Below, one piece after another: positions 5,943 to 26,076 of a DNA stretch of 64,000 nt. The position numbers were made by a program, and so were the translations under genes. The stretch lies in the IMG/VR virus record IMGVR_UViG_3300042465_005589, positions 62,001-126,000 of that record. One strand, 5' to 3'. Numbering within the stretch: the stretch's first letter is position 1; every line of letters starts with the position of its first letter. The notes under the pieces were generated by a model. That model was not told where the DNA came from. It saw only the letters and a program-made list of their open reading frames with translations, and did not search any database.

Positions 5943-5996
5943 AATAATTAGTTTTAAATTCGGTACAAAGATAATACTTATTTTTAATCCACCAAA

Positions 5997-12038: not shown

Positions 12039-12247
12039 TTTATACGTTCTTTGATTATTAATTTTTTTGCTCTATCAAATAAAGTGTCAAAATACTTACC
12101 AAATTCTTCATCAGAAACTACTTTATTAAAAAAGTCATCAAAAGTAATAATTTCACCACTTTCATCCAAATGAAGTTTATATGCTCTCTCAACTATTTTT
12201 TCACCTTCCGGACCCATTATACGTGTGGTATTTGGACTCTCACACAA
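12035..12247 (-). CDS. Hypothetical protein
   Basis: 70-aa ORF in operon. Confidence 0.55.
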   Translation of the reverse strand: MCESPNTTRIMGPEGEKIVERAYKLHLDESGEIITFDDFFNKVVSDEEFGKYFDTLFDRAKKLIIKERIK

Positions 12248-12687
12248 GTTTGTGCTTGACCCTCGTTCATATAAAAATTGTTCAAATATCCCATTATGTT
12301 CGCACTTCCGATTGGGTTTGCAGAATGAACATATACAATTGGAAATACAAATTTGTCAGCCTTTCTTTCACTTCTACTCATATTGAATCTACCTTCATTT
12401 GTATTGTGAAACAACGCAACCAAGAACTTAGAGGCATCATATCCGGTTTTCTCATCAATATTGTTGTAATCCAAAGTATAATTTGGCGAAACATTGTTGA
12501 AATACTCCTTCATTGCTGTATCCCCCAAATCGTGGTCCAACGAAATTATATCAATATTCTCCAATCCAATCTCATTAACTTTACTAACAAATTCATCGTA
12601 ATTTCTTACAACTATCCAATTATCTCCGGTTGGAGTTCTTACGTCATCTAAATAGATACGATAAGGTGGTTTTACATTATTTTCCAT
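12217..12687 (-). CDS. Cyclic-phosphate-processing receiver-like domain protein
   Basis: IYLDDVRTP..WIVVRNYDEF..ISLDHDLG..HSANPIG. Confidence 0.82.
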   Translation of the reverse strand: MENNVKPPYRIYLDDVRTPTGDNWIVVRNYDEFVSKVNEIGLENIDIISLDHDLGDTAMKEYFNNVSPNYTLDYNNIDEKTGYDASKFLVALFHNTNEGRFNMSRSERKADKFVFPIVYVHSANPIGSANIMGYLNNFYMNEGQAQTCVRVQIPHV

Positions 12688-12688: not shown

Positions 12689-13162
12689 TTATAATAATTT
12701 TTTTAATACACTATCCCAATCAGGGTATTCATTCCAAACTTTTTTCTCATAATTCCACCCAAAATGAATTAATTCACCGGTGAACTCTCCGGCACCGTTT
12801 GCCGTTCTATCATCAATTAAATAATCACCAAGTAATAAATCTTTTCGATGAGTAATTACCATTTTTTTATGAAATAACTTACCAAAATATTTCTCAATCC
12901 AATACCTTTTATCCGTAGACGCATAAGGGTTTCCCCAAGGCGCCGCAGTGGCAATCAATAATTCATATTTCCCACTATCAACCAACTTATTGATTGCCTC
13001 AATTGCCCCATCATATGGTTTAGGGTCTCTAAAGATACCCGGAATATGGTCAGGACTATGTTTGTATTTGTGAACTAAATTTGGATGTTCATCGAACCAT
13101 TTATCAAATTCTCCCCCTAAATCAACCAATACACCATCCATATCAATAAAAATTCTTTTCAT
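12689..13162 (-). CDS. 5'(3')-deoxyribonucleotidase, HAD family
   Basis: IFIDMDGVLVD, K.LLLGDYLIDD. Confidence 0.88.
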   Translation of the reverse strand: MKRIFIDMDGVLVDLGGEFDKWFDEHPNLVHKYKHSPDHIPGIFRDPKPYDGAIEAINKLVDSGKYELLIATAAPWGNPYASTDKRYWIEKYFGKLFHKKMVITHRKDLLLGDYLIDDRTANGAGEFTGELIHFGWNYEKKVWNEYPDWDSVLKKLL

Positions 13163-14154: not shown

Positions 14155-14434
14155 AATTTCCTTATTTTATTTTTTATGTTTATTGAACTTCGCTTCGTTG
14201 GTATTAATTCCAACTCAAATGTCTCTGTGAACACGCGAACCTCAGCAACAAGGTTTCATTTATAAATATAAGGATACTTTATTTTATTGTAAATAAAAAA
14301 CCCCCAAGTTTCCTTGAAGGTTTTATGTAGAGTTAACTGGTATCTACACTTAGGAATGACCCTAAGACCACCGTTCATCACCTGTAAGGGTCTAACGATA
14401 GATATTGTACTTGCTTACACTCAAATATCCGCTG

Positions 14435-14510
14435 TGTCCTATACAGGATTCGAACCTGTGACCTTTTCGTTATGAGCGAACTGCTACTGACCGGACTGAG
14501 CTAATAGGAC
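14435..14510 (-). tRNA. tRNA-Met or Ile2 (CAT)
   Basis: Cloverleaf, loop CT-CAT-AA. Confidence 0.85.
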
Positions 14511-14549
14511 TAAAATGGGTTTTTAATGAACCCACAAACATATGTCAAC

Positions 14550-14780
14550 TTATTGGTGGTGTTTCACATACCTACCAAATTTATCAACCCTCACAGAGAG
14601 TTTCTCCAATCTAAAGTTCCACTGTTTGAACTTTCCTAAGCCCGATTTAATTCGTGCTTGTTTAATCGCAGATTCCTCTGCCTTCTCACGTCCTTCTTCC
14701 GTAGTTTCTACGAAAAAAGTGGGAGCCTGAACACCGTTATTAACGGGAACTACTCTCCAAATTCTCAATTTCTGAGTCAT
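14550..14780 (-). CDS. Hypothetical protein
   Basis: 76-aa ORF between tRNAs. Confidence 0.6.
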   Translation of the reverse strand: MTQKLRIWRVVPVNNGVQAPTFFVETTEEGREKAEESAIKQARIKSGLGKFKQWNFRLEKLSVRVDKFGRYVKHHQ

Positions 14781-14847
14781 AAATTTTAGCTAATAGCTAA
14801 AACTATGTGGAGTTGGGTTGGTTGTTTTTCATATTAATAAATATTAG

Positions 14848-14926
14848 TATCCCCGACGAGAGTTGAACTCGTAAGCCTAAGCGTCTCCTTTTAAGGAAGA
14901 GGTGTTTACCGTTTCACCACGGGGAT
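14848..14926 (-). tRNA. tRNA-Leu (TAA)
   Basis: CT-TAA-AA loop, variable arm. Confidence 0.8.
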
Positions 14927-14953
14927 GTGTTCCCCCAATGAGATTAATTTGGG

Positions 14954-15123
14954 GTAGATTTTTTCTGTTTTCCTATTCAAAAGTCGAGACGGTCTTACCC
15001 GCACATAAAAGTCAACTATTACTTGGAGGTGAGTTAGTACGCTCCCTTTTCCCAAAGACCCCCTCTGTAAAACCGTTTGAGGCGTCAGCTACATCTTTGT
15101 TTAAGAAACGATGCCAAATCTAT
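14954..15123 (-). ncRNA. Orphan structured RNA, ~170 nt
   Basis: Closing stem GTAGATTT/AAATCTAT, raised GC. Confidence 0.35.
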
Positions 15124-15144
15124 TGAGTATCTCTATCTCAATTG

Positions 15145-15238
15145 TAGTCAGGAGAGGAATCGAACCTCTCTACAGGGTGCTACCCGTCATCCGTGACCTT
15201 CCATCGGACTCGAACCGACCTTGTATCCAACCTGACTA
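15145..15238 (-). ncRNA. tRNA shell 4 with a nested second T-arm
   Basis: AGTCAGG acceptor; internal TCGGTTCGAGTCCGA. Confidence 0.6.
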
Positions 15239-15244
15239 TATTAT

Positions 15245-15321
15245 AACAACTACTCTTATCCCGTCTGTTATTCACAAGCCCTAATTTGTGTCAGGAGATT
15301 CGAACTCCATCCCTAGTTGTC
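15245..15321 (-). ncRNA. Second permuted (YrlA-like) tRNA-like RNA candidate
   Basis: Terminal stem, T-arm GGAGTTCGAATCTCC, then closed hairpin CACAA/TTGTG. Confidence 0.45.
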
Positions 15322-15362
15322 AAGTGTGTCTAAAGAGCGTTTGACACTTCCTTTATAATTTG

Positions 15363-15486
15363 TAGTCAGAACAGGGGTCGAACCTGTAATAAAAGACAAG
15401 CGGTTAGTCCTTTCACAAGGATTAGGGATTATGTCTATTCCCACATTTAACACACCACTGCGTACACCAATTCCGCCACCTGACTA
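15363..15486 (-). ncRNA. tRNA shell 5 (Leu-type D-arm, ~60-nt cargo)
   Basis: AGTCAGG acceptor, GGCGGAATTGGTGTACGC, T-arm. Confidence 0.65.
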
Positions 15487-15559
15487 TTTTCTCGTCTTTC
15501 CGAGATGTCAACTACTTGTATGTTGTTCCTACATACCAATCCTCTTATAGTCGATTTTG

Positions 15560-15681
15560 TGAACAGAGTAGGATTCGAACCTACAATAGTACCATACTCA
15601 TAAATTTCCGTTTACTTCGAGGAATCGAACCTCATCTCCCGACCTCCTGGCCGAGACGCTTTACCATTTACCACCCGTTCA
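15560..15681 (-). ncRNA. tRNA shell 6 with a nested second T-arm
   Basis: Acceptor TGAACGG/CTGTTCA; internal GAGGTTCGATTCCTC. Confidence 0.6.
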
Positions 15682-15686
15682 TTTTG

Positions 15687-15760
15687 AGCTTCCTGTCAGA
15701 ATCGAACTGACTCTATTCCGGGTTACAAATCCGGTACACCACCATTCGTGCGTAGGAAGC
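15687..15760 (-). tRNA. tRNA-Thr (TGT)
   Basis: TT-TGT-AA loop, A-C mismatch at stem base. Confidence 0.7.
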
Positions 15761-15869
15761 CTGTCGCAGAGTATTTTTTTTAAGTAGAAGTCAACTCTGT
15801 CTCTTAAACTACTAAAAGAAACTGCCCAAGGTCTATCCTGCTTTCGCTGTCCAGATTTTTCTCTGTTTC

Positions 15870-15959
15870 TTATAACATCATCACTTCGGCCACATTGGGA
15901 GAACCGCAGTTCCCACGTTGTTTAAGGAGGTAGTTGGCGGTGTATCACACCGAGTTATG
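15870..15959 (-). ncRNA. Orphan structured RNA, ~90 nt
   Basis: Closing stem and internal hairpins (GGTGTGATACACC, GGGAACTGCGGTTCTCCC). Confidence 0.35.
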
Positions 15960-15970
15960 ATAATGTATTG

Positions 15971-16043
15971 TACCTCAGGAGGGAATCGAACCCTCAAAAT
16001 CTTGTTCCTAAGACAAGCGTGTCTACCGTTCCACCACCAAGGC
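15971..16043 (-). tRNA. tRNA-Leu (TAG), short variable loop
   Basis: CT-TAG-GA loop, Leu-type D-arm. Confidence 0.75.
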
Positions 16044-16051
16044 AATTGATG

Positions 16052-16123
16052 TGACTCCACAGGGATTCGAACCCCGATAATTTCCTTAGAAGAGAAATGT
16101 CCTATCCGTTGAACGATGGAGCC
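16052..16123 (-). tRNA. tRNA-Arg (TCT)
   Basis: CT-TCT-AA loop. Confidence 0.85.
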
Positions 16124-16127
16124 AATT

Positions 16128-16348
16128 TATTCTGTTACCGACATAGATTGGTAATTAAGTGTGAAGGCCCAAACCCCTTCACTCCCCTATTATAGTCTGT
16201 CGCAACGTTGGAACGAATGCCGACCTTTTCACTTAACCTTTCGTTAGACATACGAATCTATGTTTTCTGTATGTGGTGAGTAACTTCCTTCCCCACTTGT
16301 GTTTCCGAGATATCGAGGGCACCATACTGTCTAACGTCAAACAGAATA
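16128..16348 (-). ncRNA. Orphan structured RNA, 221 nt
   Basis: 9-bp closing stem TATTCTGTT/AACAGAATA, several internal hairpins. Confidence 0.5.
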
Positions 16349-16358
16349 TAAAATTTAA

Positions 16359-16530
16359 AATAAAACACTGCTGTGGAGCAACACCACAATCCGACTTAAG
16401 GTTTTCATCAGGTGGATAGCTAATCCGGACTTATTCCCTTCTCACCGCAAAACAGATAATACGTACTTTCTGAATACTATAGGTGTCGTGATAACAGGTG
16501 CTGGTTAACCTATTTTCGTCGTGTTGTATT
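16359..16530 (-). ncRNA. Orphan structured RNA, 172 nt
   Basis: Closing stem AATACAACAC/GTGTTTTATT. Confidence 0.45.
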
Positions 16531-16534
16531 TTTG

Positions 16535-16605
16535 TGCGAGTACCGGTAGTCGAAACCGGCCCATCTGATTGGAAGTCAGAGATGCTACCGAAACACTTCA
16601 CTCGC
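16535..16605 (-). tRNA. tRNA-Gly (TCC)
   Basis: CT-TCC-AA loop. Confidence 0.85.
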
Positions 16606-16633
16606 AGTTAGATGAAATTAATCATCTATTTTG

Positions 16634-16807
16634 TTACACTTTTGTTTTAAGAGTGTCAATCTCTTTGTTGATTCTCTTCACATCAGAATCAGTTAATGGA
16701 ATCTTGGTATCCATAGTACCTTTTTCGGTTTTTACACCATTTTTTAATTGTTTCTCCAACATTTCAAGAACTCTTTGTTGTCTTGACCTTTTTGCTACTG
16801 TAGCCAT
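16634..16807 (-). CDS. Small basic hypothetical protein (57 aa)
   Basis: MATVAKRSRQQRVLEMLEKQLK.. read by hand. Confidence 0.6.
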   Translation of the reverse strand: MATVAKRSRQQRVLEMLEKQLKNGVKTEKGTMDTKIPLTDSDVKRINKEIDTLKTKV

Positions 16808-16829
16808 ACGGATTTAGTTATTAAATTAG

Positions 16830-16902
16830 TAGCGTAGGGCAGGTAACGCTCCTGCTTTGTTCGGCTTATGAGACCGATGGGATACTATACCCCCCCCTCG
16901 CG
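16830..16902 (-). tRNA. tRNA-Met (CAT), atypical, initiator-like C1 mismatch
   Basis: CT-CAT-AA loop; T-loop AGCGTTA. Confidence 0.6.
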
Positions 16903-16919
16903 ATGTATTATTTATTTTG

Positions 16920-17026
16920 CTGACTAATAAGGATTTGAACCTTAATCTCCCTTCCCCTGAGAAGCCCACGTTCCAGGGACTCGAACCCTGTTTTGGAGGA
17001 TGGTGTGCACCATTACACTATAATCA
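16920..17026 (-). ncRNA. tRNA shell 7 with a nested second T-arm
   Basis: Outer AAGGTTCAAATCCTT, inner CAGGGTTCGAGTCCCTG. Confidence 0.55.
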
Positions 17027-17076
17027 ATCGGATGCTTCGAATCATCCATTCCCAAGGTAATTAATCTTGAGTTTTG

Positions 17077-17147
17077 CGGTCTATGACGGTAACGCTCCGT
17101 CTACTCAACAGTGACAGTGTTGGATGATGCTTCTTCACTAATAGACC
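17077..17147 (-). tRNA. tRNA-Asp (GTC)
   Basis: CT-GTC-AC loop, G73, T-loop AGCGTTA. Confidence 0.8.
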
Positions 17148-17216
17148 TTGTTTTTATTCTCAACAAAGATAGGTAGAACAATTTAAACTACCAAATCTTT
17201 TTTTATTTTATTTTTG

Positions 17217-17288
17217 TGGAGGTACACGGTAACGCTCCGTGTTCTGTGATTTGCAAAACCACTGTAATTGCTTTTATACGATACCCCC
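17217..17288 (-). tRNA. tRNA-Cys (GCA), atypical (A73)
   Basis: TT-GCA-AA loop; 5' end overlaps the endonuclease stop codon. Confidence 0.65.
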
Positions 17289-17918
17289 ATTATTTATTTT
17301 CCTTCCCAATCTCCATCCTTCCGGAATTAAATCTCCTTTAAATATTTTTTTATTCTCAATTTCATTTGTTATCCAACAAGTCCCATACTGAGAATTATTT
17401 TCCCCATTACCTTGTCCTTTTCGAGATTCTTTCATTTTCTCAATAGATTCGGGGCTATGTTTTTTCCCTTTAAAATTATCATACTTAATCTTCCCCTCTT
17501 TATGTAGTTTTTTTACTCCTTCTTGTCTTACACGAATCATTTTATCTCGATATTCCGGGTCTTTCCATCTTTCTTTCATAAGAATACTAGACGCTATTTG
17601 ACCCTTTTCCCAATCTTTTTTTGTAAATCCACCTGAACCACCTTCTTTAAGATTCATACATAATTTATCGGAGATTAAAATCTTATCAACAATTTTTAAC
17701 TCTCGAATAACTAACTCTTCTCTTGTTAGTAAAAACTCCAAAATTTCTTTTGTGTGGTTTTCTTTACCGTATTTTCTAATAGAATATCTTAATCGTTTTC
17801 CACTACCCAAATAACCATCTTCTAAATTAGTGGTACTGTGCATTCCGATATAAAATCTATTTGTAACATTACAAGTTGTTTTATAAATGTAATGTATATG
17901 TGGTTTTTTTCTCGCCAT
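17274..17918 (-). CDS. Seg-like GIY-YIG homing endonuclease with NUMOD3-like motif
   Basis: YIYKTT..FYIGMHST..YLGSG; FKGKKHSPESIEKM. Confidence 0.88.
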   Translation of the reverse strand: MARKKPHIHYIYKTTCNVTNRFYIGMHSTTNLEDGYLGSGKRLRYSIRKYGKENHTKEILEFLLTREELVIRELKIVDKILISDKLCMNLKEGGSGGFTKKDWEKGQIASSILMKERWKDPEYRDKMIRVRQEGVKKLHKEGKIKYDNFKGKKHSPESIEKMKESRKGQGNGENNSQYGTCWITNEIENKKIFKGDLIPEGWRLGRKINNGGIV

Positions 17919-17975
17919 TTTGTTCTTTTACTATAAATATCTCAATATATAGTAAAAGTACAAAAATGTTTAAAG

Positions 17976-18047
17976 TACTGCCACGGAGAATCGAACTCCG
18001 ATTTTATGGATGAAAACCATATATCCTGACCGTTAGATGATGGCAGC
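17976..18047 (-). tRNA. tRNA-Glu (TTC)
   Basis: TT-TTC-AT loop. Confidence 0.85.
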
Positions 18048-18152
18048 GAATTTTGGATAGATGAGGTTCTATCCGGACCAGGACTTTCTCCCTTGGGAGA
18101 TGTCATTTTTACATTATCAATATTTCAATTAACTTGTTTCTTTTTGATGGTA

Positions 18153-18183
18153 CAAAGATAATACTTTATTTCATTCTACCAAA
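18153..18183 (-). promoter_or_regulatory. Bacteroidota-type promoter
   Basis: TTTG..TATCTTTG; a second copy at 18312. Confidence 0.75.
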
Positions 18184-18615
18184 TTTTATTCTTCTTTTTT
18201 TTCTTCTTCGATTAAAACATTTTTTAATCCGTAGGTTACTCCTAATATTGGTGAGTAATCCATAACCAACTCTTCTCTTATATCGTCCATATCTTGTTTT
18301 TTAATTCGGTACAAAGATAATCTTTTATTTCATTCCGACAACTATAAACCAAAAAAAAATCCACCTTTTTTGAAGATGGATTTTTGAATATTTTTTTTAC
18401 TTAAATATATATCATACCATCGACTTCCAAGTTGTATCTCTACCCTCAGTTCCCGCTATCGTAAGTAATATGTTTAAAGTTTGCATTTGTTGTGTTATTG
18501 TAATTTCTAATAAATATACGACTTTTTATAAAAGTGTCAAGTCTTTTTTTATTTATTTTTTTAATAACGATGATTTTAAAACTATTTATAGATAATAAAC
18601 GTTAAAAACTTTAAT

Positions 18616-18786
18616 ATGAATAAAGAACAAATTTTTGGTGTTATTCGCCATGTATTCACTGCCGTTGGTGGTATTGTAATTGCTCAAGGTTACATTTCTG
18701 ACGGATTGTACACTGAACTATCGGGTGCGGTATTAACATTAGTTGGTGTAATTTGGTCAATTGTTGCCAAAAAACCAGTAGTGTAA
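18616..18786 (+). CDS. Small putative holin (Pam3-gp28-like)
   Basis: MNKEQIFGVIRHVFTAVGG.., two TM segments, read by hand. Confidence 0.7.
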   Translation: MNKEQIFGVIRHVFTAVGGIVIAQGYISDGLYTELSGAVLTLVGVIWSIVAKKPVV

Positions 18787-18839
18787 TAAACAATAAAAAG
18801 GGTTAGATAATTCTAACCCTTTTTTTATAATTATTATTT

Positions 18840-19184
18840 TTAATAATCCCAAATATCTTTATCTTTATCTCTTTTAAGTAATTTTTTATATTCGAGAACT
18901 TTTTTTGGATTTATAAATCTAATTCCGTTATATAGGAATGAATGATTATCAATTAAATCATCAATATCATATTTGGGCCAATTATCGAAGAACTCAATAT
19001 CTTTGGTTCTATATTCTCCTTTATCATTGAATCCCCATTTTGATGGTCGTATAATAACATCTAAATCGTTAACATCATCAACCATACCGGTTATCACTAA
19101 TGGTGCCGAACCAAAAACAGCATAATCCTCAGAGTTTAAATTATAATCCTTGAGTTTATCCATTAAAAATTTAAAGTTTTTCAT
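18840..19184 (-). CDS. Minimal nucleotidyltransferase (Pol-beta superfamily)
   Basis: VFGSAPL..G..DLDV. Confidence 0.7.
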   Translation of the reverse strand: MKNFKFLMDKLKDYNLNSEDYAVFGSAPLVITGMVDDVNDLDVIIRPSKWGFNDKGEYRTKDIEFFDNWPKYDIDDLIDNHSFLYNGIRFINPKKVLEYKKLLKRDKDKDIWDY

Positions 19185-19202
19185 ATTGATAAATATATAA
19201 AA

Positions 19203-19400
19203 AAAAGTTTAACAACCCCGCCCTTGGGTCGTAGCGGGCAACAATGGGAAATCCGGAATTCGTCGTGTTCGTCACCGGCGTACTAGTCCTTATCTATCCT
19301 TTACCATATTTCTATGGTGCTACTATTGGGAGGTCACCCCTATCAACACGTCTAGTCCATTAATTTTTTAGAGTATGGACACCCCGGTTGTTAAACTTTT
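19203..19400 (-). ncRNA. Orphan structured RNA, 198 nt
   Basis: Perfect 15-bp closing stem, multibranched interior. Confidence 0.6.
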
Positions 19401-19405
19401 TAATT

Positions 19406-19481
19406 TGGGATATTGATAGGATTCGAACCTATATCCTCCCGGCCTTACGCCGGTCGCACGTCCAATTGTGCTTCAAAATCC
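19406..19481 (-). ncRNA. Degenerate tRNA-like gene with 5-nt anticodon loop
   Basis: Intact T- and D-arm; CCGGC-GTAAG-GCCGG. Confidence 0.55.
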
Positions 19482-19552
19482 ATATTTCTTCGGGAGAGAC
19501 CCTCTAGGGATAACCATAACGGAATTACCCTTGACTCACTCTCCGTCTTCTG

Positions 19553-19623
19553 CGCAGACCGTAGGAATCGAACCTACCCATCGAGGTTTTGGAGACCTGA
19601 CCGACGCCTTGTCTGTGACCTGC
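19553..19623 (-). tRNA. tRNA-Trp (CCA)
   Basis: CT-CCA-AA loop, G73. Confidence 0.8.
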
Positions 19624-19627
19624 ATTT

Positions 19628-19787
19628 AATAACATAATTCTTCTTGGTTCCCCGCCGGGTAACCCCCCTACTTTTTCACACAACCCGGATGCCTCCGAAT
19701 CTAATTTTCTATTTTACTCCCTAGTAAGAAACGCGTCTTCCATTCGGTTGTTCAAGCCCATTTTCGTGGTTAAACAATTATGTTATT
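19628..19787 (-). ncRNA. Orphan structured RNA, 160 nt
   Basis: 12-bp closing stem AATAACATAATT/AATTATGTTATT filling the gap between two tRNAs. Confidence 0.5.
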
Positions 19788-19789
19788 TG

Positions 19790-19859
19790 AGGTCTCGGTG
19801 GGAATCGAACCCACTCTGTTAGTTTTGCAGACTAACCGGTCGCCACGACCATCAAGACC
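19790..19859 (-). tRNA. tRNA-Cys (GCA)
   Basis: CT-GCA-AA loop, U73. Confidence 0.8.
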
Positions 19860-19934
19860 AATTAACCTACGACCTAAAGAACAGGAATTGTGTCCATATC
19901 ATTCTATGAGTACCGTAGGTTTTCTATTTTAAAA

Positions 19935-20042
19935 TTATCACTACGGGATTCGAACCCGTATTCAGTAACAAATTAAGAGATTCTATCTCAGTTACTATGC
20001 TAACCCAAGGTGGTATTCATTCCCACTTACACCAAGTGATAA
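19935..20042 (-). ncRNA. tRNA shell 8 (hairpin inserts in D-loop and anticodon loop)
   Basis: T-arm ACGGGTTCGAATCCCGT; extended arms. Confidence 0.55.
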
Positions 20043-20045
20043 TCT

Positions 20046-20888
20046 TTAATTTTCTGTTTCTAATCTTTTAATAACATCTTTAATATTGATATATGATGTT
20101 AAAATTGTTGGTAACCCAAGAAGAGCATTACAAAAGTCGAACATATATCTATAAGTTGAAAATACACTTCCCACACTCACCTTATTATACATTACATAGT
20201 AAGTTAACAATGCGGTTACACTTCCATAAACAATTCCTTGAATCCAAATTGAGAACTTAGCATCAATACTTGACATTTTAAGAGATAAGGACTGACCTCT
20301 TTTTAACAAATTGTTAATTGCTGAGATTTTTCTCGTACCAATCACATCAGTTTGTTCTTCAGACAAATCATTATATTGACTCGTAATATCTGCTATCTTT
20401 GGTGAATAATATGCTGTCGCTCCCAAGATTAAAATTGTTGTGATAATCAAGAACCCAACAATCGGTAAACTTACCATTGACAAGAAGTAGATAGCACCAA
20501 CCAAACCAATGATTGTTTGTATTACTAACAACATATCTCTCTCAAAAAACTGAACGATGTAGTGCATTAAGGTTAATCTTCCATTGATTTTGGTAGTCTC
20601 AACATCACTATCAAGTTGTTTACAAGTTTCAATAGAAGCAAATCTTCTATAAATTCCGGAGAACACTTTAGTGTCGTAAATTCTACTAATATATCCAAAG
20701 AACATAATCGCAGCAAACGTAGAAACCAAATACCATATGTATGAATAATCTTTAACTATCAAATGGTCAATCGCATTACCCAAAACTTTTGGATACATAA
20801 CCATTAATATCGCATTAATCATAAACAATGAATACGAAAACATTATTGATTTCCAATTCTCCCTAAACATTATTTTTAACTTATTCAT
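20046..20888 (-). CDS. ABC-transporter six-TM domain protein without ATPase domain
   Basis: Six TM segments; LGNAID..RIYDTKVF. Confidence 0.7.
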   Translation of the reverse strand: MNKLKIMFRENWKSIMFSYSLFMINAILMVMYPKVLGNAIDHLIVKDYSYIWYLVSTFAAIMFFGYISRIYDTKVFSGIYRRFASIETCKQLDSDVETTKINGRLTLMHYIVQFFERDMLLVIQTIIGLVGAIYFLSMVSLPIVGFLIITTILILGATAYYSPKIADITSQYNDLSEEQTDVIGTRKISAINNLLKRGQSLSLKMSSIDAKFSIWIQGIVYGSVTALLTYYVMYNKVSVGSVFSTYRYMFDFCNALLGLPTILTSYINIKDVIKRLETEN

Positions 20889-20928
20889 ATCTCCTCTTTT
20901 TTAATTTTGACAAAGATACAATTAAATT

Positions 20929-21720
20929 TTAAAATAATTTGGTTTGAACTGAAAAAACTTTTTCTAATCTTTTTTCAGACATTTTAACATATTCATCGTG
21001 TATTTCATAACCAAGACCTTTTCTCCCCAATTTCTTACACGAAACTAATGTTGTTCCTGAACCTAAAAATGGGTCTAACACTAAATCACCATAAAAAGAA
21101 TAATATTTTACAATATTGTCTGATAATTTTTCAGGATATGGTGCCAAATGTTTTGATTTAGTCTCCGGATTAATTAACCAAACATTACTTCGTTCATATT
21201 CTTCATTAACCAATGATTTCTCCAAAGTTTCTTTATCATACGACCTAACAATCTTATCTATTAAAAAGTTAGCCGGTTTTTGAAATACTAATATTGTTTC
21301 CGATACTAAATTTGGTTTATACGCCACAGGTTTTCTATGTTGGAAGAACCCGCCATTTCTATTAATTGCAGCACCTTCAGGTTTAACCCAAACAATATCA
21401 TCAATATATTTCCAACCCATTTTTTCCATTATTGCGAAAAAGTGGAATGGGATTGCCAAACGTTTACTTTCGTGAGACCTTGATTCTCGAGCCACAATAA
21501 CCGGAGATAAATTTACCACACACATACGACCATCCTTAGTTATTCTGAAAATTTCTAAAAAAACATTTTTTAAAAATTCCAAGTAATCTTCATATGTTGG
21601 CCATTCACTATATGACTTAGCATTATAATAGGGTGGAGAAGTCCAAGTTAAATCAACACAAGGTTCTTCAATTTTTTTTAATCCAGATAAACAATCTTCA
21701 TTTATTATTTTTAATTCCAT
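20929..21720 (-). CDS. DNA methyltransferase (N4-C/N6-A, beta class)
   Basis: TSPPY, HLAPYP, VLDPFLGSGTT. Confidence 0.93.
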   Translation of the reverse strand: MELKIINEDCLSGLKKIEEPCVDLTWTSPPYYNAKSYSEWPTYEDYLEFLKNVFLEIFRITKDGRMCVVNLSPVIVARESRSHESKRLAIPFHFFAIMEKMGWKYIDDIVWVKPEGAAINRNGGFFQHRKPVAYKPNLVSETILVFQKPANFLIDKIVRSYDKETLEKSLVNEEYERSNVWLINPETKSKHLAPYPEKLSDNIVKYYSFYGDLVLDPFLGSGTTLVSCKKLGRKGLGYEIHDEYVKMSEKRLEKVFSVQTKLF

Positions 21721-22148
21721 TATAGGTTAAAATTTCTTGCGGAATCTTTTTTATTAGAACAATCACCGCTGTCGATGCTCTTTCTATTATGACATAATTT
21801 ACAAAATGTTTTAACATTTTCAGTATCATTATTATTGTGGTCACCATCTAAATGGTCTAAATCTAAACAACCAATTTCAAATCCAACCCAATCTTCAATG
21901 GTTGGGACCGGACATTTAAATCCTAATTGACCATCAATATTTTCACAATATTTTTTCTTATGAATGACAATACCTTCTCTAATTACCCCTTTTTTTCTAT
22001 CTGTTTGACATCTTGAACATTCAGTCTTAAAAGACCAATTTGTCCAACTTCTAACCGCAACATCATTATCGCACCCAATGTTTACACACTTAGGTAAAAT
22101 AAGACCCCTTTCATAATATTTAGTTTTTTGTACGTTTGAAATACTCAT
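21720..22148 (-). CDS. HNH-family protein
   Basis: LDLDHLDGDHNNN..CKLCH. Confidence 0.7.
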   Translation of the reverse strand: MSISNVQKTKYYERGLILPKCVNIGCDNDVAVRSWTNWSFKTECSRCQTDRKKGVIREGIVIHKKKYCENIDGQLGFKCPVPTIEDWVGFEIGCLDLDHLDGDHNNNDTENVKTFCKLCHNRKSIDSGDCSNKKDSARNFNL

Positions 22149-22181
22149 ATTTTTTAGTTTATATAATAATACGAGTTTTTT

Positions 22182-22691
22182 TTAGAAAAACAAATATGGT
22201 TCCCATTCTTTTGGAATTTCGTGGTGAACCTGTTTCATCAACATCAAATAGTGTGGTCGTCTTGGTTGTGGAATTTCTTTACCATACTCTTCCAATGTTA
22301 AATTGGACTTCTCACCGTTACATCTTCTACAAGCGGTAACCAAGTTGTCCCAACTGTCTTTACCACCCTTAGATTGGGGCACTACGTGGTCTAATGTTAA
22401 CGACTTTCTATTATTGTCCCCACAATACACACACTCAAAATTATCTCTACGATAAACATTCTCTCTACTTAAAGGAACTTTTTGAATTATCTGATTCACA
22501 TATTTGTAGACCCGGATAATTGATGGTTTTTTGATATCCAATTCAGGATTCACTAATTTGAATGATTCCGGATGTTCATTTATAACGTCAGCATTACCCT
22601 TATAAGAAATGACGAAAGCCCTCTCTGTGGAAATAATACTCCTCGCCATAAAACTTGAATCCAAAACCAAAGTTTTTTGGTAACTACTCAC
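22182..22691 (-). CDS. HNH endonuclease (McrA-like)
   Basis: RDNFECVYCG..TLDHVVPQSKGG..WDNLVTACRRCN. Confidence 0.9.
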   Translation of the reverse strand: MSSYQKTLVLDSSFMARSIISTERAFVISYKGNADVINEHPESFKLVNPELDIKKPSIIRVYKYVNQIIQKVPLSRENVYRRDNFECVYCGDNNRKSLTLDHVVPQSKGGKDSWDNLVTACRRCNGEKSNLTLEEYGKEIPQPRRPHYLMLMKQVHHEIPKEWEPYLFF

Positions 22692-22722
22692 GACTATTAA
22701 TTTTTAATTAAACATTTTTTTG

Positions 22723-22793
22723 TACCCCCAGGTGGTATCGAACCAACTTCCCGATATTAAAAGTATCGTGCTTCACCTTAAAGCTTTGGGGGT
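22723..22793 (-). tRNA. tRNA-Lys (TTT)
   Basis: CT-TTT-AA loop. Confidence 0.85.
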
Positions 22794-22875
22794 GATTGGG
22801 CTCATTTTACTCTATCATTTGGCTCAAAATATAAGTAATTTGAGCTTAATAATCAAAATCAGTGAGCCACATTTG

Positions 22876-22949
22876 TAGGTGGTATGAGACTCGAACTCAT
22901 AACCTCTTCGGTATCAGCGAAGGACTCCAACCAATTGAGCTAACCACCT
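22876..22949 (-). tRNA. tRNA-Ile (GAT)
   Basis: CT-GAT-AC loop. Confidence 0.85.
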
Positions 22950-22955
22950 AAATTG

Positions 22956-23032
22956 TCGGGATAGCAGGATTCGAACCTGCGAGTTCTCCTGCTCCCAAAG
23001 CAGGCGGGGTAACCGGACTCCCCAATATCCCG
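22956..23032 (-). tRNA. tRNA-Pro (TGG)
   Basis: TT-TGG-GA loop. Confidence 0.88.
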
Positions 23033-23097
23033 AATTTTCTAATTCTACGCTTCCCCCATACTGTTAGGGTTCTATAAATTAGTAACAATCTCCCTCG

Positions 23098-23171
23098 TCT
23101 AAATGACTGGACTCGAACCAGCGGTCTGTACATTCCAAGTGTACCGGATTAACCAACTTTCCCACATCTAG
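23098..23171 (-). tRNA. tRNA-Pro (TGG), second copy
   Basis: CT-TGG-AA loop. Confidence 0.8.
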
Positions 23172-23175
23172 AATT

Positions 23176-23288
23176 TAATTAGTTGAGTTTATAACATCTT
23201 TATCCTACTAAGGCAAGGACTCCATTTGGGGTTCCGTTGATTGATGTCTCTTTATACCCCTTGACGGAACAAACGGGGGAACTAATTA
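23176..23288 (-). ncRNA. Orphan structured RNA, ~110 nt
   Basis: 9-bp closing stem TAATTAGTT/AACTAATTA. Confidence 0.4.
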
Positions 23289-23290
23289 TT

Positions 23291-23485
23291 TTATAATGAT
23301 TTAATTAACTCATCATACTTACCTGAGTGATAATCCTCTACCATTTGTTGAATTCTTAAATCTCTTGATTCAACACCTTTTCTTAGTTTTTCAAGTTGTT
23401 CGGGTGTTGGATTGTTATTTACCGTGTAATTGACTCCTATCGCATCTAATTTATCGGTAATTTCTTTTATTTCAATTTTTTTCAT
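23291..23485 (-). CDS. Hypothetical protein
   Basis: 64-aa ORF. Confidence 0.65.
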   Translation of the reverse strand: MKKIEIKEITDKLDAIGVNYTVNNNPTPEQLEKLRKGVESRDLRIQQMVEDYHSGKYDELIKSL

Positions 23486-23602
23486 AATATCTATTTTACC
23501 TCTAAATAAAGAGTAACTTTAATTCCTTTTTTAGTTATGAAAAACCCTGCTTCATACCAAAATTTTTCTTTCTCTTTTTCTTCCATAATCTTTAATTTTC
23601 TG

Positions 23603-23688
23603 CGGAGAGCAGAATACTCGAAATCCATCCCTTTTACAGAACCACTCGCTTAGCAGGCGGTGACAATACCCTGATTGTTTTACTCTCC
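23603..23688 (-). tRNA. tRNA-Ser (GCT)
   Basis: CT-GCT-AA loop, long variable arm, G73. Confidence 0.8.
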
Positions 23689-23780
23689 AATTCGTAGGAC
23701 ATCGCTTAACCTACAGTGAATAGCTCTTTCACTTTTGACGTTGCCATATTTACATATGTTGGCATCTAACGATTTTTTTG

Positions 23781-23853
23781 TGTCCCCAAGAGGATTCGAA
23801 CCCCTATCGTATCTGCCGTAAAGATAAGTCCTATCCAATTGAACGATGGAGAC
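23781..23853 (-). tRNA. tRNA-Arg (ACG)
   Basis: TT-ACG-GC loop. Confidence 0.85.
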
Positions 23854-24063
23854 AATTTGAGGTTGAGAACTCCTCTGTGTTGTGTAGGATGATATAACCT
23901 ACCTCGTATTTCATATTCCCCTCTCACCGGGAACAACACATTTACCATTACTGATAGTATCTTTATGTAAATTAAAGTATTAGTACTATAGACATATTAT
24001 ATTTAATTGACCGTTTCACCAATTTGCACAAGGGTGACTTTAATTTACAAAGATACTCAATTT

Positions 24064-24252
24064 TTACTTCCACTGAGTCATTCGGTTATACTTCCAAGTT
24101 TTATGTTCTCTGTATTTGTGAGAGAACTGACCTTTTCTGTAATAAACACCCTCATCCCAATAAGATGGGTATTCAAACTTTAACCAAATCAATCTGTAAT
24201 CTTTTGAACAAGTCGCCTTGTTCAGTTTCATTCTGTTTGTGTTTACACTCAT
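24064..24252 (-). CDS. Small basic hypothetical protein
   Basis: 62-aa ORF. Confidence 0.6.
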   Translation of the reverse strand: MSVNTNRMKLNKATCSKDYRLIWLKFEYPSYWDEGVYYRKGQFSHKYREHKTWKYNRMTQWK

Positions 24253-24302
24253 AATCTTGAGTCTGTTGTTTAGCAGACCTCAAAGATTATCCAATACCTT
24301 TT

Positions 24303-24560
24303 TCATAACCGTAATTTATAAACTCGTTTATATTCGTCCAACGCCGACTTTAGATTCTCAATACATTCTCGGTAATTAACATCATCACCAAGATTAAATC
24401 TCTCATTTTCTTGTTCCCTCTTGAACAACACTTTTAACGAATTATCAATGTTGGATAAAATGTCCAAGTAAACCATCTCTTTGTCTTTGGATTTCTTTAA
24501 ATCAAATTTTAAATCTACAATTAGACCCTCTAATTCTTCAATTTTTTCATTCTCATCCAT
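24303..24560 (-). CDS. Hypothetical coiled-coil protein
   Basis: 85-aa ORF. Confidence 0.7.
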   Translation of the reverse strand: MDENEKIEELEGLIVDLKFDLKKSKDKEMVYLDILSNIDNSLKVLFKREQENERFNLGDDVNYRECIENLKSALDEYKRVYKLRL

Positions 24561-24574
24561 AACACATAATTTAG

Positions 24575-24647
24575 GGTGACTAAGGAGAATCGAACTCCCA
24601 TTTACAGAACCACAATCTATCGTGTTAACCGTTACACTATAGCCACC
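24575..24647 (-). tRNA. tRNA-His (GTG)
   Basis: TT-GTG-GT loop, G-1/C73. Confidence 0.88.
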
Positions 24648-24653
24648 ATATTT

Positions 24654-24759
24654 AAACCTATCAATGTGGGTTTGAGATGTACCCTTTTCAATCCGCTTTC
24701 ACACCCATCACCCCTTCTTAAGTAGGAGCTGTCAGTATCGGATACCACATTTAAGGTTT
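24654..24759 (-). ncRNA. Orphan structured RNA, ~105 nt
   Basis: Interrupted closing stem AAACCT/AGGTTT plus AATGTGG/CCACATT. Confidence 0.4.
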
Positions 24760-24761
24760 TG

Positions 24762-24833
24762 TACTCTTGGAAGGAATTGAACCTTCTTTTCATTCTTATC
24801 AGGAATGTGTGCTAACCATTCTACTACAAGAGC
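24762..24833 (-). tRNA. tRNA-Ile (GAT), second copy
   Basis: CT-GAT-AA loop. Confidence 0.8.
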
Positions 24834-24910
24834 AATTTTACCCCACTTCACCGGCTTAACGGACCGGCTGCCATATGGGAGTGGGGGTTTCCTGTTGTAT
24901 CAGGACTCCG

Positions 24911-24982
24911 CGGACTTGGGGAATCACGATATCCCGACCCTTCGCTTAACAGGCGAACGCTCTTCCTCTGAGCTACAAGTCC
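24911..24982 (-). tRNA. tRNA-Asn (GTT), atypical T-loop
   Basis: CT-GTT-AA loop, G73. Confidence 0.75.
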
Positions 24983-25131
24983 AATTTTGACTACTACCTG
25001 ACTCCTTTCGAACTTTGCAGGCTCGTATCATTCAATAATAGTAGTCCAAGGCGTTACGCACCCATCTGATAACTTTACTTCTCTTGAGTCCGGATAAGCG
25101 CTTACCAACTCGGGGGTTGTTTCCTTGTTTG

Positions 25132-25204
25132 TGGGGACTACCGGTTACGCTCCGGTCTCCTTGATTCTTCAGACCAATGCTTTCACTAGATTAGCTTAAT
25201 CCCC
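25132..25204 (-). tRNA. tRNA-Phe (GAA)
   Basis: CT-GAA-GA loop; T-loop AGCGTAA. Confidence 0.78.
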
Positions 25205-25361
25205 AATTATAATAATGATGGAGTACCCGTCTCGCTCCATTCTTAAGTGCTTAATCGTAGTTTTACGAGGCCCTCGGCACATTCCCTTTTCAGGGGGGTG
25301 ATGATTTCTTGAACCCATATTGAATTGTCGACATCCAATATAGAGAAACCCATTATCATAG

Positions 25362-25442
25362 TGGGCAGTAGTGGACTCGAACCACTCCAGTTAAGACTTG
25401 ATTTACAGTCAAGTTGCCGTATCCGAACGACTTTTACTACCC
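25362..25442 (-). tRNA. tRNA-Tyr (GTA)
   Basis: CT-GTA-AA loop, variable arm. Confidence 0.85.
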
Positions 25443-25487
25443 AATTACACTTCCTTTCCTATGTGGTATAGTGTGAACCAATATTAG

Positions 25488-25558
25488 TACCTCGTGGTGG
25501 AATCGAACCACCGCCATTTGTATGTAAAACAAATACGCTCCCATTACGCCAACGAGGC
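25488..25558 (-). tRNA. tRNA-Val (TAC)
   Basis: TT-TAC-AT loop. Confidence 0.82.
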
Positions 25559-25742
25559 TGAGTCCCACTTTACTATTGCAATAGTTGATGAGGTAGTGAG
25601 ACACCTTTATCATCATTCTGTACCGAGTAATGGTGTTGAGCCATTCTAAAGTCAGATATGAGCCGTCTTTGGTCCCGGACCACTCGGCAGTTGTGGTGGA
25701 CATAGGCTCATCACCTATTCTTGGGTTTCCACCGAACCCTTG

Positions 25743-25814
25743 TTATCCCTAATGGAATCGAACCACTTCCGCGTAGACCAAAACTACGTGTACTAACCGT
25801 TATACGAAGGGACA
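25743..25814 (-). tRNA. tRNA-Gln (TTG)
   Basis: TT-TTG-GT loop, U1-A72. Confidence 0.82.
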
Positions 25815-25914
25815 AAATATTTTTTAGTTAATGAACGGTTACCACAATTACGTTCGCCCCGGACTGCTCCGGACATTCTTTTTTGGGTGTGGATTAAACT
25901 ATTTAACTAACCCG

Positions 25915-25996
25915 CGGAGGAGACAGGATTCGAACCTGCAACCCATTACGAGCGACGGTTTTCAAGACCGCTCGACAACCAACTGTCCACTCCTCC
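25915..25996 (-). tRNA. tRNA-Ser (TGA)
   Basis: CT-TGA-AA loop, variable arm, G73. Confidence 0.87.
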
Positions 25997-26045
25997 ATTT
26001 TTCTTACCAATATTTCAAATAACTAATTCCTTTATTTTGATGGGA

Positions 26046-26076
26046 CAAAGGTAATCCTTTTTTTCTAACTTCCAAA
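26046..26076 (-). promoter_or_regulatory. Bacteroidota-type promoter at the head of the tRNA array
   Basis: TTTG..TACCTTTG. Confidence 0.75.

Follow-up and report, generated by a model that had tools for sequence, protein, structure and literature searches.

Conserved RNA cassettes between the tRNA genes of a large freshwater phage

The tRNA gene array of a large freshwater phage raises the question of whether the segments that separate its tRNA genes are passive spacers or genes for RNAs in their own right. The array was examined in a window of 64,000 nucleotides (positions 62,001 to 126,000 of IMG/VR record IMGVR_UViG_3300042465_005589). An earlier note, made from the sequence alone, had listed 12 higher-GC spacers with complementary first and last nucleotides and had inferred polycistronic transcripts from which tRNA processing releases a dozen unknown RNAs. 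Here, the listed segments, referred to below as elements and named by their first coordinate in that list, were analyzed by folding, shuffling controls and comparison with related phage contigs. Most gaps between the tRNAs of this array were found to hold conserved, folded, non-coding RNAs of unknown function. The inference of the note was supported in every part that can be tested in silico, whereas release and stability of these RNAs remain inferred in the absence of expression data. The features are collected in Table 1.

Table 1. Features of the tRNA/RNA island and of the 4205 cluster. The single-sequence test gives the longest Watson-Crick helix compared with dinucleotide shuffles.
Position	Strand	Feature	Single-sequence test	Remarks
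26121-26091		Strong intrinsic terminator		
26042-26063	-	Promoter-like motif (AAWAAAGWATTATCTTTGTACC family)		TAnnTTTG-type -7 box; about 45 nt upstream of the first tRNA (Ser)
14434-25996	-	tRNA/RNA island		22 ARAGORN tRNAs, 4 further Rfam tRNAs, at least 4 aberrant long tRNA-like RNAs, structured cassettes, and a few homing-endonuclease, methylase and small ORFs
25824-25910	-	Cassette between tRNA-Ser (4 nt away) and tRNA-Gln (10 nt away)	8 bp, p<=0.02	Internal hairpin with compensatory changes
25559-25741	-	Further conserved structured spacer between tRNA-Gln and tRNA-Val		Homologues in 36 loci
25209-25359	-	Cassette between tRNA-Tyr and a non-canonical tRNA-Phe (listed as 25212-25356)	Not significant	Internal 10-nt palindrome
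25132-25204	-	tRNA found with Rfam		
25047-25131	-	Further conserved stem-closed spacer		Directly after the tRNA-Phe-like gene; homologues in 21 loci
24989-25046	-	58-nt cassette 6 nt upstream of tRNA-Asn	8 bp, p<=0.02	Two compensatory changes in the closing helix; inner hairpin covaries
24834-24909	-	Further 73-nt, probably pseudoknotted RNA		Starts 0 nt after a tRNA and ends 1-3 nt before the next; homologues in 67 loci
24654-24759	-	Cassette between tRNA-Ile and tRNA-His	7 bp (inner helix), p<=0.02	Conserved closed core about 24663-24751
23176-23288	-	Cassette 4-5 nt upstream of tRNA-Pro	9 bp, p<=0.02	
22794-22874	-	Further conserved stem-closed hairpin RNA between tRNA-Ile and tRNA-Lys		Homologues in 25 loci
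about 19933-20044		Aberrant long tRNA-like RNA		
19628-19787	-	Cassette 1-2 nt after tRNA-Cys and 3 nt before a tRNA-Trp-like gene	12 bp, p<=0.02	
19553-19624	-	tRNA found with Rfam		
19481-19552	-	Further conserved structured spacer		Homologues in 25 loci
19408-19480	-	tRNA found with Rfam		
19202-19401	-	Multi-helix cassette of about 200 nt (listed as 19203-19400)	16 bp, p<=0.02	In relatives, one variable loop carries either a 15-nt hairpin or a GIY-YIG homing endonuclease gene
18795-18824	.	Bidirectional intrinsic terminator		Ends the first transcription unit
18385-18355		Strong intrinsic terminator		
18149-18170	-	Promoter-like motif upstream of tRNA-Glu		Start of the second RNA run
16920-17026		Aberrant long tRNA-like RNA		
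16831-16901	-	tRNA found with Rfam		
16359-16530	-	Cassette 3 nt after tRNA-Gly	Not significant	11 of 42 predicted pairs compensatory among 4 distinct sequences
16128-16348	-	221-nt cassette 4 nt before tRNA-Arg(tct)	9 bp, p<=0.02	
15878-15963	-	Corrected extent of 15870-15959	Not significant (as listed)	Likely pseudoknot (ACCGC/GCGGU, covarying); very conserved core
15560-15680		Aberrant long tRNA-like RNA		
15363-15485		Aberrant long tRNA-like RNA		
15144-15237		Aberrant long tRNA-like RNA		
14927-15143	-	Corrected extent of 14954-15123	Not significant (as listed)	Hairpin at each end; the two loops pair (GAGAU/AUCUC, covarying)
14297-14324	-	Intrinsic terminator after the last tRNA (Met)		
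4481-4502	-	Promoter-like motif before the 4205 cluster		
4205-4367	-	Cassette between two long tRNA-like genes (0 nt and 5 nt away)	11 bp, p<=0.02	
4055-4199		Aberrant long tRNA-like RNA		
1800-2207		GOLLD RNA		

Folding, conservation and covariation of the elements

All 12 listed segments have complementary ends, and, read on the minus strand, 10 of them fold with their ends paired. In 16359 the closing helix sits about 5 nt inside each end, whereas the single-sequence fold of 15870 does not pair its ends. The GC content of the segments is 0.39-0.48, as compared to about 0.27-0.33 for the surrounding window. When the longest Watson-Crick helix spanning at least 80% of each element was compared with 200 dinucleotide shuffles, 8 of the 12 elements were significant on their own. 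Among 463 unique same-strand tRNA-tRNA gaps of 50-300 nt in loci from related phage contigs, a terminal helix of at least 6 bp occurs in 36.5% against 3.8% of shuffles, and one of at least 8 bp in 21% against 0.2%.

Homologues were found for 10 of the 12 elements, and covariation exceeded that of slid controls in every family with informative relatives. Compensatory changes occur in the closing helix of 25212, 15870, 16359, 19203, 19628, 23176, 24654 and 24989. By contrast, the 9-bp closing helix of 25824 is invariant, which says nothing either way, and 16128 and 4205 have only near-identical relatives, so closure of these three elements is without comparative support. It has to be considered that most families other than 25212 rest on 4-20 distinct, fairly close sequences and that RNAalifold structures favour covarying columns, so the slid controls flatter them. 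The best case is the family of 25212, which occurs in more than 120 IMG/VR contigs: 97.3% of cells are paired against 78.8% in shuffles, the covariation score is 0.504 against 0.160 (0 of 500 shuffles as high) with slid structures reaching at most 0.12, and 8 of the 9 closing pairs changed on both sides. A GUCGAC loop is present in 58 of 63 distinct sequences of this family.

The comparison also led to corrections of the earlier note. For 15870, the conserved closing helix is UUAUCAU/GUGAUGA, while the CATAAC/GTTAT pairing of the element as listed is not conserved. For 24654, the outer AAACCT/AGGTTT pairing is not conserved, but the inner AUGUGG/CCACAU helix is. For 14954, the unit is the whole gap, which is closed by a covarying contact between the loops of two flanking hairpins instead of a helix that joins the ends. 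Furthermore, there are more such RNAs than the dozen inferred in the note, since at least six further spacers are also conserved and structured.

No Rfam 15 family matches the elements at E<=1, and they are absent from 50,697 GenBank phage records. The segments are not copies of each other. Indels are mostly not multiples of 3 and substitutions show no 3-base periodicity, so the segments are not coding.

Placement in the array and proposed processing

Every tRNA and cassette of the array lies on one strand, and each family keeps a spacing of 0-6 nt to the upstream tRNA and of 1-14 nt to the downstream one, even where the flanking tRNAs differ between phages. These are the same distances that separate adjacent tRNAs. 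In the family of 25212, 110 of 136 copies lie within 15 nt of a tRNA, and 1282 of 1282 tRNAs within 2 kb share its strand. The tRNA flanks over 1260 contexts showed an A-rich leader, U at -1, and then N73-C-A-A-A with no CCA. A promoter-like motif occurs 7 times on the minus strand against 0.02 expected, with copies just upstream of the first RNA gene of three runs, and strong intrinsic terminators were found only at four positions, never between a cassette and its tRNA. This is in accordance with polycistronic transcription, although the island has at least three transcription units, not one. The cassettes are accessory modules that are gained and lost as units: in different phages, the slot between tRNA-Gly and tRNA-Arg is empty, holds 16359 alone, holds 16128 alone, or holds both.

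Following this, we propose, with moderate confidence, that the island is a set of RNA operons in which genes for many unrelated, structured, non-coding RNAs of about 60-220 nt are slotted between tRNA genes. Each run would be transcribed from a promoter upstream of its first RNA gene to a terminator at its end, and the host's tRNA-processing enzymes would cut the precursor by an RNase P-type cut at the 5' end of each tRNA and an RNase Z-type cut (or endonuclease plus trimming) after the discriminator base of the CCA-less tRNAs. Those cuts would automatically free each cassette with tails of only a few nucleotides, and the paired ends would then shield it from exonucleases, so that it persists as a discrete small RNA. 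Whereas the covarying folds and their conserved placement on the tRNA strand were observed, transcription, the cleavage sites, stability and action in trans are inferred.

Cis-acting spacers, remodelled tRNAs and DNA-level elements

Alternatively, the folded spacers might act only in cis, keeping neighbouring tRNAs from misfolding into each other or positioning the processing enzymes, and be degraded once the tRNAs are cut out. This would be in line with the tight, conserved spacing, with the fact that each cassette is individually dispensable, as seen from the empty slots, and with the lack of an identified target or partner. However, this reading appears doubtful: many adjacent tRNAs in the same arrays manage with spacers of 0-15 nt (180 of 1040 unique gaps), an insulator needs no invariant stretches of 20-30 nt, conserved loops, loop-loop contacts or pseudoknots, and more than ten unrelated folds are each conserved across phages while their flanking tRNAs change.

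It is unlikely that the elements are decaying or heavily remodelled tRNA genes that have kept only their acceptor stem. The window does contain aberrant long tRNA-like RNAs with an acceptor stem and one or two T arms; rnaC of phage T4 has a T arm against its closing helix, and in the family of 25212 the 3' hairpin abuts the closing helix with 0-1 nt between them. Contrarily, none of the 12 elements scores as tRNA with ARAGORN or with Rfam, even at E<=1, compensatory changes and invariant loops show selection for their own folds, and the families share no sequence with one another.

Still less likely is a role of the complementary ends at the DNA level, as terminal inverted repeats of small mobile elements or as recombination or homing sites, despite the fact that the cassettes come and go as units, that homing endonuclease genes lie in the island and that one sits inside a cassette in relatives. 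The ends covary to keep pairing instead of keeping a recognition sequence, G-U pairs occur on the tRNA strand only, internal helices covary too, and each family is single-copy in the window with no shared ends; no target-site duplication was noticed at the ends inspected, albeit without a systematic test. Finally, that the segments encode small proteins is very unlikely: short stop-free frames exist in some of the six frames but are uninformative at these lengths, whereas covarying helices run the whole length of the elements, and the indel and substitution patterns described above speak against it.

Relation to described RNAs and possible role

The closest precedent is found in phage T4, where rnaC and rnaD (species 1 and species 2 small stable RNAs) lie inside the tRNA cluster on the tRNA strand in the layout tRNA-Arg, 1 nt, rnaD, 6 nt, rnaC. 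They are annotated without an assigned function and are not in Rfam, rnaC folds with its ends paired, and the GIY-YIG homing endonuclease gene segB sits in the same cluster (PMC2330249). However, they show no sequence similarity to anything in the window, T4 has two such RNAs at the end of its cluster whereas at least 17 unrelated cassettes are interleaved with the tRNAs here, and the T arm of rnaC is canonical, while the 12 elements do not carry one. GOLLD and ROOL are likewise phage-encoded structured RNAs of unknown function often found near tRNA islands (PMC12286853), and two self-complementary motifs in the family of 25212 hint at self-association, but the cassettes are 60-220 nt rather than over 500 nt and do not match the GOLLD or ROOL models. 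In MALAT1/mascRNA (PMC8457004), tRNA or tRNA-like folds serve as cleavage signals that define the ends of neighbouring RNAs in one transcript, although in a different domain of life and with different products. Bacterial Y RNA-like RNAs (YrlA, RF02553) are small RNAs closed by a terminal stem and associated with RNA-repair genes, but no cassette has a YrlA match, the one sub-threshold hit (3203-3307; 34 bits against a gathering score of 69) overlaps a tRNA, and no Ro/TROVE protein was found among the 30 window ORFs scanned.

Although no function can be assigned to any of the cassettes, their setting is a tRNA island with an RNA-repair gene set (Rnl1-like ligase, phosphoesterase, cyclic-phosphate cREC domain) a few kb downstream and a GOLLD RNA about 12 kb away. 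The most likely arena for these RNAs is therefore the phage-host contest over tRNA, translation and RNA damage.

Folding, homologues and covariation of the intergenic RNA segments

The window has a GC content of about 30%, and its relatives are IMG/VR viral contigs of up to 362 kb and freshwater-lake metagenome contigs. Besides the tRNA array it encodes an Hsp70, homing endonucleases and a DNA methylase. Since every tRNA is on the minus strand, the array is read here from 25996 down to 14434, and RNA families are named by the first coordinate of the corresponding segment in the window. The earlier note had claimed that the first and last nucleotides of 12 segments in or near the array are complementary, and this observation was confirmed. 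Ten of the 12 segments folded with their ends paired, the other two being 16359-16530 and 15870-15959, and the GC content of the listed segments was 0.39-0.48 against a background of about 0.3. When the longest Watson-Crick helix spanning at least 80% of each element was compared with dinucleotide shuffles, it was significant (p<=0.02) for 8 of 12 elements, with 7 to 16 bp against a shuffle mean of about 4-5 bp, whereas the other four were not significant alone. A first test of terminal helices on whole gaps was too strict where a gap holds two cassettes or extra hairpins and was replaced. In order to avoid using the boundaries chosen in the note, every unique 50-300-nt gap between adjacent same-strand tRNAs in all fetched loci (n=463) was then examined for a helix joining the first 10 nt to the last 14 nt. 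A helix of at least 6 bp occurred in 36.5% of the gaps against 3.8% of shuffles, of at least 8 bp in 21% against 0.2%, and of at least 10 bp in 8.9% against 0%. Although these sequences are related and the counts are hence not independent, the effect is large and general across the related arrays.

To obtain homologues, the gene of a 280-aa protein in the middle of the island served as anchor, which brought in 22 viral and 50 metagenome loci of 37-100% protein identity. Ten of the 12 elements have homologues at 72-98% identity. A 20-nt motif from the 3' hairpin of 25212-25356 hit more than 120 further IMG/VR contigs, and these enlarged several other families too. For family 25212, a covariance model found 100 copies, 63 of them distinct. 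On that alignment 97.3% of cells pair against 78.8% for shuffled partners, and the covariation score was 0.504 as compared to 0.160 for shuffles (0 of 500 shuffles as high) and at most 0.12 for structures slid by 1-3 columns. In the closing helix, 8 of 9 pairs changed on both sides. The 3' hairpin of this family never varies; however, it was the search pattern, so this is ascertainment. In nine other families, the RNAalifold pairs showed more compensatory changes than the slid controls did, but the structures were derived from the same alignments, so the controls are generous to them. Double changes were carried specifically by the closing helices of 15870, 16359, 19203, 19628, 23176, 24654 and 24989, while that of 25824 is invariant. 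For 16128-16348 and 4205-4367, only identical or near-identical relatives were found.

Compensatory changes in RNAalifold pairs of nine RNA families and in structures slid along the same alignments
Family	Compensatory pairs / total	Slid controls
14954	18 / 23	2-7
15870	6 / 22	0
16359	11 / 48	0-2
19203	10 / 41	0-3
19628	6 / 44	0-2
23176	6 / 22	0-2
24654	4 / 27	0-1
24989	2 / 13	0
25824	2 / 20	0-1

The segments are not coding: most distinct indels are not multiples of three and variable columns show no three-base periodicity. These two tests were used because a search for stop-free frames is uninformative at these lengths. The cassette families are not copies of each other, as an all-against-all blastn of 23 spacers gave a single 12-nt match.

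Extent, number and surroundings of the RNA elements

The comparison of homologues led to corrections of the boundaries proposed in the earlier note. For 15870-15959, the conserved closing helix is UUAUCAU/GUGAUGA, and a second, pseudoknot-type pairing (ACCGC with GCGGU) covaries through three variants. A 9-mer in this element resembling an anti-Shine-Dalgarno sequence, ACCUCCUUA, is not conserved in more distant homologues and is treated as coincidence. For 24654-24759, only the inner helix is conserved. The segment 14954-15123 lies at a constant 23-24 nt and 29 nt from the flanking tRNAs because the unit is the whole gap, in which a hairpin sits at each end and the two loops are complementary: GAGAU/AUCUC, with the variants GAGAC/GUCUC, GAAGU/AUUUC and GAGGU/AUCUC. 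This RNA is closed by a loop-loop contact and not by a terminal stem.

Moreover, there are more such RNAs than the dozen proposed in the note, since spacers not listed there are also conserved and folded. One of these, 24834-24909, is a very conserved 73-nt RNA in which GGAG/CUCC and CCCCAC/GUGGGG appear to form a pseudoknot. Several further units are aberrant long tRNA-like RNAs of 94-145 nt with an acceptor stem, one or two T arms (two or three of them carry two) and long inserts, most of which are missed by ARAGORN. ARAGORN also reported tRNAs with four-base or two-base anticodons, written as ???(gtaa), ???(gaaa), ???(tagt) and ???(ac), in the arrays of the fetched loci L007, L008, L011, L027 and L030, and these are tRNA-like genes with odd anticodon loops.

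Coordinates of features in the window (strand given where stated)
Coordinates	Strand	Feature	Remarks
1800-2207	-	GOLLD RNA	Rfam 306 bits, gathering score 150; downstream of a second small cluster of tRNA and tRNA-like genes, with tRNAs at 3121-3211 and 3736-3812
3329-3350	-	Promoter-like motif	
3546-3567	-	Promoter-like motif	
4055-4199	-	Aberrant tRNA-like RNA	
4205-4367		Cassette	Flanked by tRNA-like genes with acceptor stem AGTCAGG/CCTGACT
4481-4502	-	Promoter-like motif	Ahead of the 4205 cluster
5962-5983	-	Promoter-like motif	
7886-8911	-	Rnl1-type RNA ligase	
11376-12038	-	Metallophosphoesterase	
12217-12687	-	Cyclic-phosphate-processing cREC domain protein	
12689-13162	-	NT5C-like nucleotidase	
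14324-14297		Strong terminator	
14434-25996	-	tRNA array	22 tRNAs by ARAGORN; the Rfam tRNA model adds four more plus several long aberrant tRNA-like hits
14927-15143	-	Cassette, corrected from 14954-15123	Whole gap between tRNAs
15144-15237	-	Aberrant tRNA-like RNA	Acceptor stem AGTCAGG/CCTGACT
15363-15485	-	Aberrant tRNA-like RNA	Acceptor stem AGTCAGG/CCTGACT
15560-15680	-	Aberrant tRNA-like RNA	
about 15878-15963		Cassette, corrected from 15870-15959	
16124-16533		Slot between tRNA-Gly and tRNA-Arg(tct)	
16128-16348		Cassette	
16359-16530		Cassette	
16831-16901	-	tRNA with unusual T loop	
16920-17026	-	Aberrant tRNA-like RNA	
17076-17147	-	tRNA with unusual T loop	
18149-18170	-	Promoter-like motif	Ahead of tRNA-Glu
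18308-18329	-	Promoter-like motif	
18355-18540	-	Apparent small transcription unit	Near-consensus sigma-70-like promoter, 24-codon ORF and strong terminator
18385-18355		Strong terminator	
18616-18786	+	56-aa ORF	Ends at the bidirectional terminator
18824-18795		Strong terminator	
19203-19400		Cassette	
19481-19552		Further folded spacer	25 loci
about 19933-20044	-	Aberrant tRNA-like RNA	
20046-20888		280-aa protein gene	Anchor for fetching related loci
22794-22874		Further folded spacer	25 loci
24654-24759		Cassette	
24834-24909	-	Further folded spacer	67 loci
24989-25046		Cassette	
25047-25131		Further folded spacer	21 loci
25132-25204	-	tRNA with unusual T loop	
25209-25359		Cassette of family 25212 (25212-25356)	
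about 25250-25330	-	Two self-complementary sites of family 25212	
25559-25741		Further folded spacer	36 loci
26042-26063	-	Promoter-like motif	Ahead of tRNA-Ser
26121-26091		Strong terminator	
50682-52550	-	Full-length Hsp70/DnaK homologue	Pfam HSP70, E=2e-256

Placement relative to tRNAs and modularity of the cassettes

Each family keeps its distance to whatever tRNA flanks it. Family 25212 lies 3-6 nt after Tyr, Glu, Arg or Val and 6-14 nt before Phe, Ala, Val, Glu, Pro or Asp; family 25824 lies 4 nt after Ser and 10 nt before Gln; family 24654 lies 1-3 nt after Ile or Asn and 8 nt before His; and family 24989 lies 6 nt before Asn. The 24834 family starts 0 nt after a tRNA (Phe or Asn) and ends 1-3 nt before the next. 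Of 136 copies of family 25212, 110 are within 15 nt of a tRNA, and all 1282 tRNAs within 2 kb are on its strand. Over 1260 distinct tRNA contexts, the leader is A-rich with U at -1 and the 3' side reads N73-C-A-A-A with no encoded CCA, and several tRNAs have an unusual T loop (AGCGUUA or AGCGUAA). A repeated 22-nt promoter-like motif ending in TATCTTTGTACC, a TAnnTTTG-type -7 box, occurs seven times on the minus strand against 0.02 expected. As such a box appears to be typical of Bacteroidota promoters, the motif, together with one copy of family 25212 binned in a Bacteroidetes MAG and the similarity of tRNA-Glu to Cellulophaga phages, hints at a Bacteroidota host. A near-consensus sigma-70-like promoter (TTGACA, 16 nt, TATATT) followed by a 24-codon ORF and a strong terminator looks like a separate small transcription unit inside the island, and on the opposite strand lies a 56-aa ORF which looks hydrophobic by eye.

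This arrangement of promoter-like motifs and terminators supports co-transcription. A 5' cut at each tRNA and a 3' cut after each discriminator base would free every cassette with tails of a few nucleotides, although this step is inferred in the absence of expression data. RNase III is an unlikely player, because most closing helices are only 6-12 bp, given the length of its substrates. Taken together, the interpretation of the earlier note, namely that polycistronic transcripts are punctuated by tRNA processing which releases unknown RNAs, is supported as far as sequence can take it.

Furthermore, the cassettes are gained and lost as whole units. In the fetched related loci, the slot between tRNA-Gly and tRNA-Arg(tct) is empty in L007, L008 and L034, holds 16359 alone in L009, L011 and L022, and holds 16128 alone in L030, while both are present in the window. 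In L009, L010 and L022 (14404-15476 in the last), the 19203 homologue carries a 218-aa GIY-YIG homing endonuclease gene in the variable loop where L011 and L014 have a 15-nt hairpin, and both halves of the RNA and its closing helix remain in place.

Relation to described RNAs and possible roles

The closest precedent is the tRNA cluster of phage T4, in which tRNA-Arg is followed after 1 nt by rnaD (119 nt) and after a further 6 nt by rnaC (139 nt), with the segB homing endonuclease in the cluster (PMC2330249). As in T4, the cassettes lie inside a phage tRNA cluster, on the tRNA strand and within a few nt of a tRNA gene. The T4 rnaC folds closed with a T arm against its closing helix, and neither T4 RNA is in Rfam. 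However, no sequence homology was detected: nhmmer searches with rnaC and rnaD found nothing in the window (E<=1) or in the loci (E<=0.01). GOLLD and ROOL are likewise phage RNAs of unknown function "often near tRNA islands" (PMC12286853), but GOLLD matched only at its own locus in the window and no Rfam 15 family matched any cassette at E<=1. Searches of 50,697 GenBank phage records with megablast and blastn matched only tRNAs, and full-text literature searches found no description of these RNAs. In bacterial genomes, the 20-nt motif of family 25212 hit four contigs, of which two were chance partial matches in high-GC genomes and two were true copies on tiny phage-like contigs. Thus, small RNAs of this sort in phage tRNA clusters are already known, while the families and the density of the arrangement are new.

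Other assignments were not supported. None of the 12 elements was called as tRNA by ARAGORN or the Rfam tRNA model (RF00005, clan CL00001), even at E<=1, in contrast to the aberrant tRNA-like members of the array. Inverted-repeat mobile elements are not indicated either, as the families are unrelated and single-copy in the window and their ends covary to keep pairing, although target-site duplications were not searched for systematically. No small self-cleaving ribozyme (hammerhead, twister, pistol, hatchet or HDV-like) was matched in Rfam at E<=1. The segment 24989-25046 has UGAUA, a hairpin, AAA and GUC but by eye lacks a hammerhead stem I, and 24834-24909, which looks doubly pseudoknotted, has by eye a different helix order from HDV-like folds. 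A YrlA/Ro system was supported only by a sub-threshold hit overlapping a tRNA, and no TROVE domain was found among the 30 window ORFs scanned, with about 38 ORFs of at least 100 aa left unscanned. A group I intron, considered for 19203-19400 because of the endonuclease gene inserted in relatives, had no Rfam intron hit at E<=1 and no interrupted host gene.

A few kb downstream of the island lie genes for an RNA ligase, a metallophosphoesterase, a cREC domain protein and a nucleotidase, which resemble a tRNA-repair set of the T4 kind. The island therefore sits in a region devoted to keeping RNA working during infection, and this is the only basis for proposing that the cassettes act in that arena.

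Family 25212 additionally provides a lead, as it has two self-complementary sites. Its first hairpin loop reads GUCGAC in 58 of 63 distinct sequences, whereas four of the other five (the fifth is a truncated hit) have a different hairpin there, whose loop holds GCGC. A 10-nt perfect palindrome is kept through nine sequence variants, including its central four bases (GGCC, UGCA, GAUC, GCGC). Since adjacent bases cannot pair within one hairpin, this pattern fits pairing between two molecules better than a hairpin. The evidence is thin, however, as the GAUC and GCGC variants are each a single sequence and five variants have an odd central base. It is conceivable, although we consider it unlikely on present evidence, that phage tRNA arrays are production lines for a whole toolkit of RNA-only devices and not just tRNA supply, and that at least this cassette self-associates into symmetric dimers or larger assemblies, a small-scale counterpart of the GOLLD and ROOL cages encoded near such islands.

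Small stable RNAs in phage tRNA clusters have been known since T4 and still have no function. Here, more than a dozen unrelated families were found in one array, one of them with an alignment deep enough to fix its fold and all of them in a clade sampled hundreds of times in lake metagenomes, so that the problem can now be approached by comparison and by structure determination. These conserved, compact folds, with predicted pseudoknots, loop-loop contacts and possible self-association, are candidates suitable for structural work. Long spacers in phage tRNA arrays should not be assumed to be empty. While tRNA islands are usually treated as codon-usage or anti-defence tRNA supply, in this clade a large share of the island encodes other RNAs that are inferred to ride on tRNA processing.
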